From: Octopus sinensis
Lineage: Eukaryota
Direction of reading: 5' to 3'
Length of the DNA: 64,000 bases
Assembly (NCBI RefSeq): GCF_006345805.1
Contig: NC_042998.1
Span: 15,872,001 to 15,936,000, forward strand
The position numbers were made by a program, and so were the translations under genes. Positions 735-62,058 of the stretch are shown one piece after another (position 1 is the first letter of the stretch; each line of letters starts with the position of its first letter). The notes under the pieces are model-generated. The model did no database searches and was not told the DNA's origin. It saw only the letters and a list, made by a program, of their open reading frames with translations.

Positions 735-2329
735 CTTTTAAAATGTCTCTTTTGTGTATTCGCGCGTGCGTGTAAAATTAATATGCACAGAATTTAGCAA
801 TTTTGGAGAACTAAAAGGGAGAATTAAAACTGTCACGAAATGTGACTATGGTGCTAGAAAACACCAACATTGCTGGAAATCAGAGCTAAAAATGCTCTAA
901 TGCTATAATCAACGTACATATATGTAAATATATACACTAACTTGGACTTTAATCGTTCCAAAAGTGCCGATGGAGTATTATTTATTCTGACCTGAGTTTT
1001 GGCAATTTCCGTTTGTCTCCTCAGAGCGGACTGGCTCGAACTCCGGCTCTTTCTGGACTCACTTCTTATTAGTATATATGCTTTCATCAGTGAAATCTAC
1101 GGAGGATTTAGTGAACGAAAAAAAATATATTCAAATAAATTAAACATAATATCATGAATAGCGATAGCGAAACCGGTCAATATATGAAAATTTATATTAA
1201 AACCATGTAAGTGTGCGTATTTTCCTTTTTTAATTTCTTATATATATATATATTATATATATATATATATATATATATCTTTTAAAATGTCTCTTTTGTG
1301 TATTCGCGCGTGCGTGTAAAATTAATATGCACAGAATTTAGCAATTTTGGAGAACTAAAAGGGAGAATTAAAACTGTCACGAAATGTGACTATGGTGCTA
1401 GAAAACACCAACATTGCTGGAAATCAGAGCTAAAAATGCTCTAATGCTATAATCAACGTACATATATGTAAATATATACACTAACTTGGACTTTAATCGT
1501 TCCAAAAGTGCCGATGGAGTATTATTTATTCTGACCTGAGTTTTGGCAATTTCCGTTTGTCTCCTCAGAGCGGACTGGCTCGAACTCCGGCTCTTTCTGG
1601 ACTCACTTCTTATTAGTATATATGCTTTCATCAGTGAAATCTACGGAGGATTTAGTGAACGAAAAAAAATATATTCAAATAAATTAAACATAATATCATG
1701 AATAGCGATAGCGAAACCGGTCAATATATGAAAATTTATATTAAAACCATGTAAGTGTGCGTATTTTCCTTTTTTAATTTCTTATATATATATATATTAT
1801 ATATATATATATATATATATATCTTTTAAAATGTCTCTTTTGTGTATTCGCGCGTGCGTGTAAAATTAATATGCACAGAATTTAGCAATTTTGGAGAACT
1901 AAAAGGGAGAATTAAAACTGTCACGAAATGTGACTATGGTGCTAGAAAACACCAACATTGCTGGAAATCAGAGCTAAAAATGCTCTAATGCTATAATCAA
2001 CGTACATATATGTAAATATATACACTAACTTGGACTTTAATCGTTCCAAAAGTGCCGATGGAGTATTATTTATTCTGACCTGAGTTTTGGCAATTTCCGT
2101 TTGTCTCCTCAGAGCGGACTGGCTCGAACTCCGGCTCTTTCTGGACTCACTTCTTTATTAGTATATATGCTTTCATCAGTGAAATCTACGGAGGATTTAG
2201 TGAACGAAAAAAAATATATTCAAATAAATTAAACATAATATCATGAATAGCGATAGCGAAACCGGTCAATATATGAAAATTTATATTAAAACCATGTAAG
2301 TGTGCGTATTTTCCTTTTTTAATTTCTTA
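735..2329 (+). repeat. Tandem array of three 544-bp units, each separated and flanked by (TA)n
   Basis: Units start at 735, 1279 and 1823 (CTTTTAAAATGTCTC...) and end ...TAATTTCTTA. By eye they are identical except one extra T in unit 3 (~2153). Confidence 0.95.
1145..1186 (+). ncRNA. Hammerhead-like motif, type I, minimal, A3-U8 core variant (copies 1689-1730, 2234-2275)
   Basis: CAUAAUAUC-AUGAAUA-GC GAUA GC-GAAA-CCGG-UC-AAUAUAUG. It has GAAA, a palindromic helix III ACCGGU, a GUC triplet and a 2-bp helix II. The core has A3/U8 instead of C3/G8, and helix I is AU-rich with a C.A closing mismatch. Confidence 0.45.
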
Positions 2330-3171
2330 TATATATATATATATACTTCTATTAAAACTTGACTTGTAATTTTCTTTTAATTCATTATATATTCGATGTT
2401 ATAGCAAATGAAAATTGCTTTCTCATATAATTCAGACCTGTATATACTATAAGTAGTTCTAACTAGAAATAATTCCTGATAGAGTCTGTCTATGTGATTC
2501 ATTCTACTTCATTTTTTTACTCGCATATATGTATGAAATCTCGGAAAAATCGTAACCAAATTCTTCTCTGTCGGTGTTTGAAGCCATATAGTTTGTCGCC
2601 TCACTGTTTCAATATACATAAAATATATAAGATATATAATAGATAAATATGTAAAATTTTGTTATAAAGTATATTATTTATCGAAGTAGAAAAATGTCGA
2701 AACTTTGACAGACTTACCAAGATTACTGATTGATACAAGTAATTCACGTATTCCAAACTTTTATTTTTATTATATCGTGCCAAAAGAACAGATGAAAAAT
2801 ATTTCCAGTAACACTGATGGGTATGATAGATGGAAGTTTTGTGACATAGATAAATAGCAAAATTGTCTCAGAGAAAAGAACTGAAATGATAAGGAAATCG
2901 ACAGAAGACAGATATTGTAAAACAAAGTCTGCCAGAAATAGAGTAAGACACACAGTCGAGACATGCGCATTCAACAAAACATTCTAAAGATTAAAAGCGT
3001 ACTGCAATATGATTTCAGATACGATTTTTCTGAAGAAAAATATAATTGCATCCGAGACGTTGGTTATATTATTGTTTATGTTTTTACACTTATTTTATTT
3101 TCCATATTGTCATTTTCTCCCTTATCTCCTATTTCTTTTTAATATAAACCATAATCATCTTCAACACCATA

Positions 3172-3232
3172 TCATCGTCGTCGTCGTCGTCGTCGTCGTC
3201 ATCATCATCATCATCATCATCATCATCATCAC
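3172..3232. repeat. (CGT)n(CAT)n microsatellite
   Basis: Direct reading. Confidence 0.95.
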
Positions 3233-59129: not shown

Positions 59130-59715
59130 TATTATTGATCCTTCTTGTACACCGCAAGGCCTGACATTTTGGTGGAAGTGAGTAGTCGACTACATCTATT
59201 CCAGATTTCAGCTGGTAACTGTTTTATCAACTCCGAAAGAATGAAAAGCAAAGTCGGCCTCGGCGGAATTAGCACCCAAAACGTAAATAGAGACGAAATT
59301 TCGCTAGTCGTTTGTTTGGCATGCGAATGTTTCTATCGATGATAAATAAGAATGATAGAGGTGAAGGATAACTTCCATTGTTGGTCAAAAGTTCAAATAC
59401 TTTGGTGTCATTACTAGACTGAAAGTCATAGAAACAATAAAAATATACATTGTGGAATTGTACGGAAAAAAAATTGATGTGAACAGGAGCGGTTTAGAAA
59501 TATTGGTTTGAAATTTTGGCACAAGGCCAGCAAGGTCGGGGAAGTGTGTGATCCAATAACATCCACCTCAGTGCTTAACTGGTACCTATTTAAAGGGAAC
59601 GAAACGATGAATGGCAACGTTGATTTCGGCGGATAAATTTGAACTGAGATCGTAAAGACAGACCAAATGCTGTTTAGTATTTTACGTGGTGCGCTAAAGA
59701 TTCTGTCAATTCATC
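59130..59715 (-). mobile_element. Two old SINE family A copies (59130-59335, 59485-59715)
   Basis: GCAAAGTCGGCCTCGGCGGAATT and TTTGAACTGAGATCGTAAAGAC, as in 1-93. Confidence 0.65.
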
Positions 59716-61853
59716 ACAAAAATAAAACTAATTAAAATTAGCTAAATTACGCGCGCTAACATACTGAGTAATTCCGTGTTCGCTGCTCATGCAGTTGTAT
59801 TAAACACAAAAGCTATGTCCTCAACCGGTTCTGTCCATTTGCCTAGAATTTAGAAAAAAAAGGTTATCAGTAACAAAGATTTGATAGGAAATATTTCCCA
59901 GTAGGAGTGAAATTGCATAAGAATTATTCGAAGAACATCCACAAAGGGGCCCAAACCATTCTACCACATCCAAGACATAACACATGACCTCTCTCTGTTT
60001 TTTACTCTTATTAGCATAACACATGTATCATAGGTCCAGTCTCCATAACAGGTCTTTAAATTCTTATTGACACGCAAGAAATCTTCAACTCACTCATAAT
60101 ATTTACTTTTGGCAGGAGACAAAAATGTTTGCTTCAACACTTAAAACATGCACAATATGTTTTAAAATAGCCACCAAATGGCGGAAGGCTAAAGTCACTT
60201 TCCTTCTAAAGAAAAATAGCATCACTATATACTTTGGTAATAACCGGTTCGTATTTCAAGTGAAAGAGGCTTGTTGATAGAGGACCATTAGTTTGTATTG
60301 CATGCGTAGTGAATGATAGCCGACAGGAAGGGACACTTCGTGCATTTCGGACAGGTTCTATATTTATGTTTACTACATTTTGGTTACAAAGACATTCTGC
60401 GGAAAGTATATTGTACAAAGTAATGTTACCATCATGTTGCCTTCAATTTCTTCGTCTTTGCTGCCATCACATTAGTCAAATTATTGTGAAGATTCGTTTT
60501 TCTCAGTGTGAATTTGATTACACATTACCAACGCCGGTATCCTGTGCACAAATAGAAATTCTTTCATTGTTGCAGATGAAATTTCAGAGCAACAGAAACT
60601 ATTTCATTCTATGTGAAATGAGTGGAAACGTGCACAAACGAGAATGTATCTGAAGACAACGTAGGAAGTAAAAAGTTACAATGTGAGATGCAGAATTTGC
60701 GATAAAGTAGAATTAAATTATCTGCTCGAAACAAAATCTAGAAAGTATTAAATTAATCCCATAAACAGAGATGCTAGTTGTCATACCAACGTTACCGGTC
60801 ACAGAGTAGTACTAATAAGAGAGGTCAAGTGGCAGAAAGAAATCAATACTGCAATCTGGTGAAGAGAATAGCAGAGGCGGTAAACACATGTATCGCCTTA
60901 ATCGGGTATTATATTTTGATTGTGTACTGTATGGAACACCTAAAGAAATTTAAGATAATAGTTTCTATAAAAAAATTTTAATTGTAATGGGAGAGGTCAC
61001 GCAAAGCAGGCATGGGTTGTAAAGAATTACAGCAATTGAAGGTAATGTTCCTATGAAAGCATACCAACGACGGAAAGTTTATAAACGTACAGCATGTTTA
61101 AGGAATCACGTGTTGTTATGACGTACCTCGACTAAATACACACACCTGCATACAACACAGAGTCAAGTTAGCCTTTTATCCCCAAACAGTAATTTCTAAA
61201 ATAATCTAAATATCTATTTCGTGTAATTCTATTATATCAGTTTCTTTATCGAACGTAATATCAGTGGTTTTAATTGAGTTATTTCTCTCTCAATCCGTTG
61301 TGATATATTTTTTTCTTATTCGAATACTATGTTTATTTCCCTCAAAAAAATAATAAGCCATATATATCGAGGATTTCAGTTATCTGCAGCTTAACATTTC
61401 AAATTTATACTCATAATAATGCTTACTGTCATATTAAAATTCATAAATTCATGTTTTGACATCCAATTACTGCCAGGTAGTAAAATATTGTTGTAAAAAA
61501 TTTATATATATATAATATATATTATATATATATATATATATATAAAATTATAAAAATATAAAAAACATAAAAATATTTTTAAAAAAAGTAAAAATTAAAA
61601 ATAATAAATAATAAATAATAAATAAAAAACTAAAAATAAAAAATAAAAAAAATATAAATAAAAATAATAAATAAAAAATAAATAATAAATAATAATAAAA
61701 ATATATATATATTTATAATTTATTTATTTATTTATATTTTTTATATATTTCTTAATTAATTTTATTTCTATGTATTGGCTTATGATTTTTCAATGTTTTA
61801 TTTGCCTAATAGTGGTTTTATCTCTAAGTTAATATAATATATATATATATATA

Positions 61854-62058
61854 TTGATTCGTTAGCTACTGCACGCATTTTTGTTTCTCTCCTTCTTTCT
61901 GTGTTTTTCTCTCTCTGTGTATCTTTCTGTTGAAGAGCGTAGGCTCGAAACGTTAAAGACTTGTTTTATTTATATTTCCTGAGCGCCATACTAATACAAT
62001 TGTTCGTTTGTTTTCCACCTGCCTTCGTCTTTTCTTTATTTTCATAAAGCTTCCCGTT
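61854..62058 (+). mobile_element. ~205-bp non-coding unit inside (TA)n carrying a hammerhead-like motif
   Basis: Unique sequence bounded by TA runs on both sides; contains the motif at 61922-61959. Confidence 0.65.
61922..61959 (+). ncRNA. Minimal type I hammerhead-like motif, variant core
   Basis: Helix I UCUUU/AAAGA; core CUGUUGAA (non-canonical versus CUGANGA); helix II GAGC-GUAG-GCUC; GAAA; palindrome AACGUU; GUU triplet. Confidence 0.55.

Follow-up and report, generated by a model that had tools for sequence, protein, structure and literature searches.

Two candidate hammerhead retrozyme families arranged as paired inverted arrays within TA microsatellites of Octopus sinensis

Contents of the locus

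A 64,000-bp segment of the Octopus sinensis genome (contig NC_042998.1 of assembly GCF_006345805.1, positions 15,872,001 to 15,936,000 of the forward strand; hereafter the window, numbered from its first base) contains repeats with hammerhead ribozyme motifs inside (TA)n microsatellites. The window is AT-rich eukaryotic DNA (~29-41% GC) with very abundant microsatellites, and (TA)n makes up ~2% of it by a strict count or ~3% by a hand sum of the period-2 rows of Tandem Repeats Finder (TRF). The original prediction described four unrelated, non-coding families here, each lying in (TA)n and each carrying one type I hammerhead. All four were found where claimed: F1 (735-2327, period 544 bp including a spacer), F2 (34023-38030, 481 bp), F3 (40847-43635, ~353 bp) and F4 (61856-62057, 202 bp). 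Tracts of (TA)n are present at both outer sides of every one of them, and pairwise local alignments score no better than shuffled sequences. They are apparently non-coding, as the two open reading frames (ORFs) of the F2 and F3 arrays (94 and 99 aa, the only ones) have no homologues in the protein collection searched, which does not include the genome of origin.

The count of four ribozyme families was too high. F2 and F3 have an exact hammerhead core and all its helices, F4 has a defective core and is doubtful, and F1 was rejected. Thus, the observation behind the original prediction is partly confirmed, and its interpretation, that hammerhead retroelements land in TA microsatellites, is partly supported: the hammerheads of F2 and F3 exceed chance expectation, their RNAs are predicted to be self-paired, F2 has an identifiable insertion site and both have a distinctive layout, whereas F1 has no ribozyme and F4 is a single copy with a core defect. 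The idea of hammerhead elements tied to Penelope and to (TA)n has already been published and is not new. What this analysis adds is that F2 and F3 are each a pair of inverted arrays, which the original prediction had overlooked, and that F2 interrupts the TA tract of a repeat resembling a short interspersed nuclear element (SINE).

The 481-bp family and its insertion site

F2 consists of two opposite arrays joined at their 5' ends. The left arm (34023-35594), with the ribozyme on the minus strand, holds 3.27 units of 481 bp; its 3' end lies 269 nt past the predicted cut (+269) on (TA)n, and its 5' end (+140) is central. The right arm (35594-38030), with the ribozyme on the plus strand, holds 5.07 units that begin centrally at +100, the base of a hairpin, and finish at +137 on (TA)n. 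The left (TA)n tract (34003-34022) meets the array at a junction that is ambiguous by 3-4 nt (ATA is common to the unit), and the right tract (38031-38099) passes uninterrupted into the tract within the SINE-like repeat.

The F2 hammerhead (AGUUCUG-CUGACGA-U-CAUU-A-GAC-GUAA-GUU-G-AAUG-U-GAAA-UCACGGUGAU-A/CAGAACU, with the slash at the predicted cut after AUA) has an exact core, a helix I of 7 bp, a helix II of 4 + 3 bp capped by a GUAA (GNRA) tetraloop with U.U at its base (10.1/11.1), and a near-palindromic helix III (AUCAC-G-GUGAU). All eight copies are identical, five of them on the plus strand (35924-35981, 36402-36459, 36882-36939, 37363-37420 and 37844-37901, the last with its predicted cut between 37894 and 37895) and three on the minus strand (34285-34342, 34766-34823 and 35247-35304). 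The F2 units differ at 16 variable columns, none of which falls in the ribozyme (~1.9 would be expected there; p ~0.13, not significant).

F2 sits within a SINE-like repeat, in its internal (CA)n(TA)n tract. The left half of the repeat lies at 33772-33995 (plus strand) and the right half, delimited by flank alignment, at 38096-38265 (minus strand). Three intact paralogues of this ~430-bp repeat occur in the window (6534-6930, 26375-26765 and 54665-55103), all with an uninterrupted tract; including the split copy, the four are 82-88% identical and vary in the length of the tract. When the two F2 flanks are joined, they align end to end with the three intact copies, and the junction falls within the TA run. 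F2 is therefore foreign DNA inserted in a TA microsatellite. Such an empty-site comparison was confined to F2, the flanks of F1, F3 and F4 having no paralogues in the window. The SINE-like repeat, which gives the impression of an octopod or cephalopod SINE, contains no tRNA-like gene recognizable by ARAGORN. Much of the (TA)n in this genome may derive from repeats of this kind.

The 353-bp family

F3 has the same two-armed form. Its left arm (40847-43258) comprises 6.8 units of 348-356 bp with the ribozyme on the minus strand, its 3' end (+215) on (TA)n and its 5' end (+268) central; the right arm (43263-43635) is an inverted copy of 1.06 units with the ribozyme on the plus strand, starting at +153 and ending at +173 directly on (TA)n. 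The left tract spans 40787-40846, as seen both in a TRF row and in the sequence, and the TA-rich tract to the right (43636-43772) consists of (TA)9, 40 nt of CA-rich sequence and (TA)33.

The F3 hammerhead (CACACG-CUGACGA-GAGGUCAAUACCUC-GAAA-CUCGAGU-C/CGUGUG) is a canonical type I motif with a helix I of 6 bp, a helix II of 5 bp and ACUCGAGU as helix III. The copy in the inverted arm (43424-43468, plus strand, predicted cut between 43462 and 43463) aligns to all of Rfam model RF00163 (positions 1-45 of 45) at 32.2 bits, with an E-value of 4e-4 in a search of the whole window and 2.4e-6 in a local search. On the minus strand of the left arm, three copies are intact (43168-43212, 42815-42859 and 42463-42507), one has a helix II shorter by 1 nt (41056-41099), one is damaged (42115-42157), and two in neighbouring units are dead through a change of GAAA to GACA (41762-41806 and 41406-41456).

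Evidence for the predicted hammerheads

A descriptor requiring the exact core and all three helices gave 13 matches in the window, where 0.005 would be expected in a shuffled one, and every match lies within F2 or F3. The CUGANGA...GAAA...UH core is complete in 8 of 8 copies of F2 and, in F3, in the four intact copies and the one with the shortened helix II. Both families have one type I hammerhead per unit of a tandem head-to-tail repeat, with three helices and an open helix I, and in both helix I is prolonged beyond an internal loop. A relaxed descriptor, which tolerated up to 2 core errors, was discarded because it makes ~9 chance matches per shuffled window. At gathering thresholds, Rfam found no matches in the whole window, and permissive scans of F1, F2 and F4 separately returned no ribozyme family of any type. 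On the strength of their sequences, the predicted hammerheads of F2 and F3 are well supported.

The RNAs of these two families also fold more stably than dinucleotide-shuffled controls, with z scores of the minimum free energy (MFE) per unit of -6.2 for F2 and -5.6 for F3, compared with -2.3 for F1, +1.9 for F4 and +0.3 for a control interval bounded by TA tracts. Folded as circles, the F2 and F3 units have 62-67% of their bases paired. The alternative that the motifs resemble hammerheads by chance, in otherwise unremarkable AT-rich repeats between microsatellites, suits F1 and possibly F4, in that the relaxed descriptor matches so freely, F1, F2 and F4 match nothing in Rfam, and F4 is single-copy with no fold signal; but it is very improbable as an account of F2 and F3, given the exact-core expectation, the MFE z scores near -6 and the alignment of F3 across the entire Rfam model.

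In metazoans, type I hammerheads whose helix III is short and palindromic cleave as dimers in multimeric transcripts and are quiet as monomers (PMC4209133). In agreement with this published view, cofolding of two ribozymes yields a classical double hammerhead with an intermolecular palindromic helix III for both F2 (-37.7 kcal/mol for the dimer versus 2 x -13.0, or -26.0 kcal/mol, for two monomers) and F3 (-40.3 versus 2 x -17.8, or -35.6 kcal/mol). The F2 and F3 hammerheads are thus predicted to pair as dimers via helix III.

Architecture of the inverted arrays

In both families, tandem copies adjoin an inverted head-to-head copy. The ribozyme strands are directed outward from the central junction, so that both 3' ends touch (TA)n. 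No array end coincides with the ribozyme cut site, and several ends lie in or beside predicted hairpins, one of which, of 7 bp, contains the right end of F3 in its loop. Both right arms amount to whole units plus a short excess (37 nt in F2, 20 nt in F3). The 3' ends of the two arms are offset from one another by 132 nt in F2 and 42 nt in F3, at one locus each.

The central junctions of F2 and F3 look like template-switch or end-joining scars. That of F2 (35556-35640) adjoins a unit-internal hairpin (GGCATT...AATGCC), and 38-40 nt of one arm are missing from the other; that of F3 (43250-43270) contains a 4-nt filler, CACG. Copying of one F2 arm from the other by simple fold-back is disfavoured, since variants in the two arms are not mirrored.

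Probable mobilization of F2 and F3

On balance, F2 and F3 are probably two unrelated families of metazoan non-LTR (long terminal repeat) retrozymes that owe their insertion in (TA)n to a Penelope-like enzyme acting in trans. The array would be transcribed into a multimeric RNA, in which neighbouring hammerheads would pair as a double hammerhead via the palindromic helix III, cleaving the transcript to unit length. The self-paired unit RNAs would probably be circularized by a host ligase and copied in trans by the reverse transcriptase (RT) and GIY-YIG endonuclease of what may be a Penelope-like element. That enzyme would nick a (TA)n tract on either strand, and cDNA primed at both nicks would extend over more than one unit by rolling-circle copying. 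This would leave two opposite arrays, joined to each other centrally at their 5' ends and bordering the TA tract at their 3' ends.

Priming of both strands on a multimeric or circular template would account for the two-arm layout, and repeated circling from both nicks would account for 3'-outward arms on TA and for right arms that exceed whole units by so little. More tentatively, then, the two-armed arrays may be footprints of two-strand target-primed reverse transcription, templated by circular RNA (circRNA) and carried out by a dimeric Penelope-like enzyme. If this is true, the structure of an insertion alone would show that animal hammerhead circRNAs are the actual template of transposition, and would identify the helper.

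Several findings weigh against retrozyme insertion by a Penelope-like enzyme. The score of F3 is just below the Rfam gathering score of 34 bits, and a search with the 481-nt F2 unit gave nothing at E <= 10, probably because its helices II and III exceed in length those of the model. Each family is represented by one locus here, so that the preference for TA rests on two or three insertions, and the outward polarity (2 of 2 cases, p = 0.25) is statistically weak. Searches by ORF or by ribozyme pattern retrieved no other genomic copies of F2 or F3; exact-pattern scans of metagenome contigs with the two ribozymes found no match, in collections that do not include the genome of origin. When every stop-free segment of at least 70 aa in the window was compared with Pfam, no Penelope-like RT or GIY-YIG domain was detected, and zf-RVT was the only match. 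Furthermore, the 3' junctions are not at a single fixed position of the unit, and neighbouring units within an arm have variants in common, including the same inactivating change in two adjacent F3 ribozymes.

Variants common to adjacent units are unexpected for rolling-circle copying of one circle and fit better with satellite-type turnover or a heterogeneous multimeric template. They favour the view of F2 and F3 as ordinary satellites with an inherited hammerhead, which grew in place by unequal crossing-over or slippage and were inverted by fold-back or template switching at fragile, cruciform-prone (TA)n, with no local reverse transcription. Long (TA)n tracts are recombination-prone, and F1, on its simplest reading, shows that a unit and its TA spacer can triplicate at the DNA level. 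Nevertheless, F2 is foreign to the SINE-like repeat and is lacking from the three other copies, which means that one copy at least, the first, came in by insertion; the polarity, with the 3' ends of the ribozyme strand outward, is the same in two unrelated families; the unmirrored variants of F2 run contrary to simple fold-back; and strong structure with mostly intact ribozymes has been kept in both RNAs. Growth in place is an unlikely explanation.

The differing positions of the 3' junctions would instead suit the capture of retrozyme cDNA, or of extrachromosomal repeat DNA, by end joining at spontaneous breaks, in which case the link to TA would reflect the fragility of (TA)n and not the specificity of an endonuclease. 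In keeping with such capture, both F2 junctions lie on 3-5 nt of TA-like microhomology, and no Penelope-like gene was found nearby in the window. If capture were random, however, outward-facing 3' ends on each side of the two families would not be favoured, and elements with this target bias are already known (PMC8557442); the layout also equals documented Penelope-like structures and is matched by two-strand cleavage and extension in vitro (PMC8557442, PMC11167929). Capture at breaks is likewise unlikely, and retrozyme insertion by a Penelope-like enzyme is preferred.

The link between animal retrozymes and Penelope-like elements has reportedly been proposed mostly from shared ribozymes and matching species distributions. 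Insertion in TA tracts together with the head-to-head layout lends modest, independent support to mobilization of animal retrozymes by Penelope-like elements. If the pattern holds genome-wide, F2 and F3 would be good substrates for studying the reverse transcription of hammerhead circRNAs, and they would help to explain the TA microsatellites of SINE-like repeats as landing sites for satellite-like arrays.

The families F1 and F4

F1 consists of three units of 504 or 505 bp on the plus strand (735-1238, 1279-1782 and 1823-2327) that are 99.8-100% identical by BLAST. Between them lie two 40-bp (TA)20 spacers, identical to each other down to a shared TT interruption. The outer tracts of F1 lie at 687-734, evident from a TRF row and from the sequence, and at 2328-2347. 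The hammerhead attributed to F1 by the original prediction (CAUGAAUAGCGAUAGCGAAACCGGUC, 1152-1185, plus strand) is unsupported: it offers only GAAACCGGUC, with no CUGANGA box or helix I and no Rfam ribozyme match, and is no better than the chance matches of the relaxed descriptor. F1 is not a ribozyme element. The simplest account is that 544 bp, one unit with its TA spacer, were triplicated very recently at the DNA level; F1 could otherwise be a concatenated copy of a TA-tailed element.

F4 occurs only once in the window, as a stretch of 202 bp on the plus strand (61856-62057) bounded by a short (TA)9 on the left (61837-61855) and a long (TA)n on the right (62058-62185). A descriptor match at 61922-61959 (plus strand) identifies a degenerate motif resembling a minimal hammerhead (UCUUU-CUGUUGA-A-GAGCGUAGGCUC-GAAA-CGU-U/AAAGA), in which A6 is replaced by U, a bulged A follows A9, helix II is 4 bp long and the palindrome is ACGU; Rfam gave no match to it. 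A bulged base after A9 is a trait of Penelope-type minimal hammerheads (PMC4209133). With a descriptor in the style of Penelope-like elements, F4 is the sole match outside F2 and F3, at 0.03 expected per window, but this descriptor was picked after F4 had been seen, and the evidence is suggestive only. On its 3' side, F4 ends 103 nt beyond the would-be cut, directly on the long TA tract. As a guess, F4 may be a decayed, 5'-truncated Penelope-type relic. Neither F1 nor F4 showed, on inspection by eye, the terminal inverted repeats expected of a TA-targeting Tc1/mariner MITE (miniature inverted-repeat transposable element).

Other repeats in the window

At 19290-21650 and 28418-30272, (TAA)n/(ATT)n tracts surround 3' fragments of Dong-like non-LTR elements. 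Two tandem 343-bp Dong-like tail fragments (19499-19841 and 20053-20396) are 99% identical and have ~210 bp of (TAT)n between them, a tandem pattern of unit plus microsatellite that recalls F1. Another Dong-like fragment (20676-21362, minus strand) contains a 228-aa ORF with the zf-RVT domain and has an inverted partner (28944-29747) that is 97% identical; the closest relatives of the ORF were found at 89% in a Logan run and at 81% in assembly GCA_024449705.1. Directly after a 233-bp (AAT)n tract, seven copies of a 22-bp minisatellite (GGGCTACAGCAAATATTCTGCT, ~90% match) occupy 30273-30428.

Two stop-free segments (22673-23014 and 48087-48581, both minus strand) may be C-terminal RT fragments of RTE/CR1-type long interspersed nuclear elements (LINEs), judging from motifs such as RPxLEY...LExVQ, and the end of a 230-aa ORF (38400-38694, plus strand) resembles a mariner/Tc1-type transposase remnant; none of these had a match in Pfam. 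Long compound trinucleotide microsatellites (CTT, TAG, ATT, ATG and ACC) at 17431-18060 and 27095-27445 give rise to spurious ORFs of up to 229 aa. Dozens of sub-threshold Rfam matches to mir-297, mir-466, mir-1277 and mir-3149 (604-734, 12729-12868, 15836-16125, 33515-33790 and others) were dismissed as low-complexity artefacts on TG, TA and ATGT microsatellites.

Comparison with known systems

Plant LTR retrozymes (PMC4918200) are non-autonomous elements with hammerhead-processed circRNA intermediates that are mobilized in trans, as is proposed for F2 and F3. They differ in possessing type III hammerheads within LTRs, a primer-binding site (PBS), a polypurine tract (PPT), 4-bp target duplications, a high GC content and Gypsy-type mobilization. 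These hallmarks were not seen in F2 or F3, which have no terminal direct repeats besides the unit itself, in an analysis that included no search aimed at PBS or PPT. The Dong/R4-type non-LTR elements of the same window resemble F2 and F3 as retroelement pieces in tandem and inverted pairs within a microsatellite, but they are protein-coding LINE fragments (zf-RVT) that occupy a different microsatellite, (TAA)n, and have no ribozyme.

Metazoan non-LTR retrozymes are tandem 150-450-bp repeats with type I hammerheads, expressed as self-paired circRNAs in many animals (PMC7229834, Cervera & de la Pena 2020). Like these retrozymes, which include newt satellite 2 and the axolotl, mussel and coral repeats, F2 and F3 have tandem non-coding units of low GC content (33.5% and 43%), a single type I hammerhead in each unit, its helix III short and palindromic, and a highly self-paired RNA; no LTR, PBS or PPT was seen in either. 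The U.U at the base of helix II in F2 is also found in the axolotl HHR_Amex2 (PMC7229834). The F2 unit of 481 bp is slightly longer than the quoted range, and insertion in (TA)n or as two head-to-head arrays, seen in F2 and F3, is undescribed in the literature compared.

Retrozymes have been proposed to be derivatives of Penelope-like elements (bioRxiv 10.64898/2026.07.22.740005), which have dimer-type hammerheads (here predicted) and (TA)n or AT-rich targets in common with F2 and F3 (PMC4209133, PMC8557442, PMC11167929). Insertion of Penelope-like elements is biased towards (TA)n, most clearly in the Naiads, a clade that has no canonical hammerheads. F2 and F3 differ from Penelope-like elements in encoding no RT or endonuclease and in having a period of a few hundred bp as opposed to ~3 kb. 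Penelope-like elements insert as tandem and inverted copies, the inverted one 5'-truncated, and carry at one end a tail of 30-40 bp attributed to two adjacent RT start sites (PMC8557442); F2 and F3 have the tandem and inverted copies, and their variable ends may be comparable to the tail. In work with a purified Penelope-like protein, both strands of AT-rich DNA were cut and extended, and reverse transcription began internally, in a stem-loop ~90 nt past the hammerhead cut (PMC11167929); comparably, the 3' ends of F2 and F3 lie 137-269 nt past the predicted cut, in or beside predicted hairpins. As matters stand, F2 and F3 add well-defined examples to a known class of element, and not a new mechanism.

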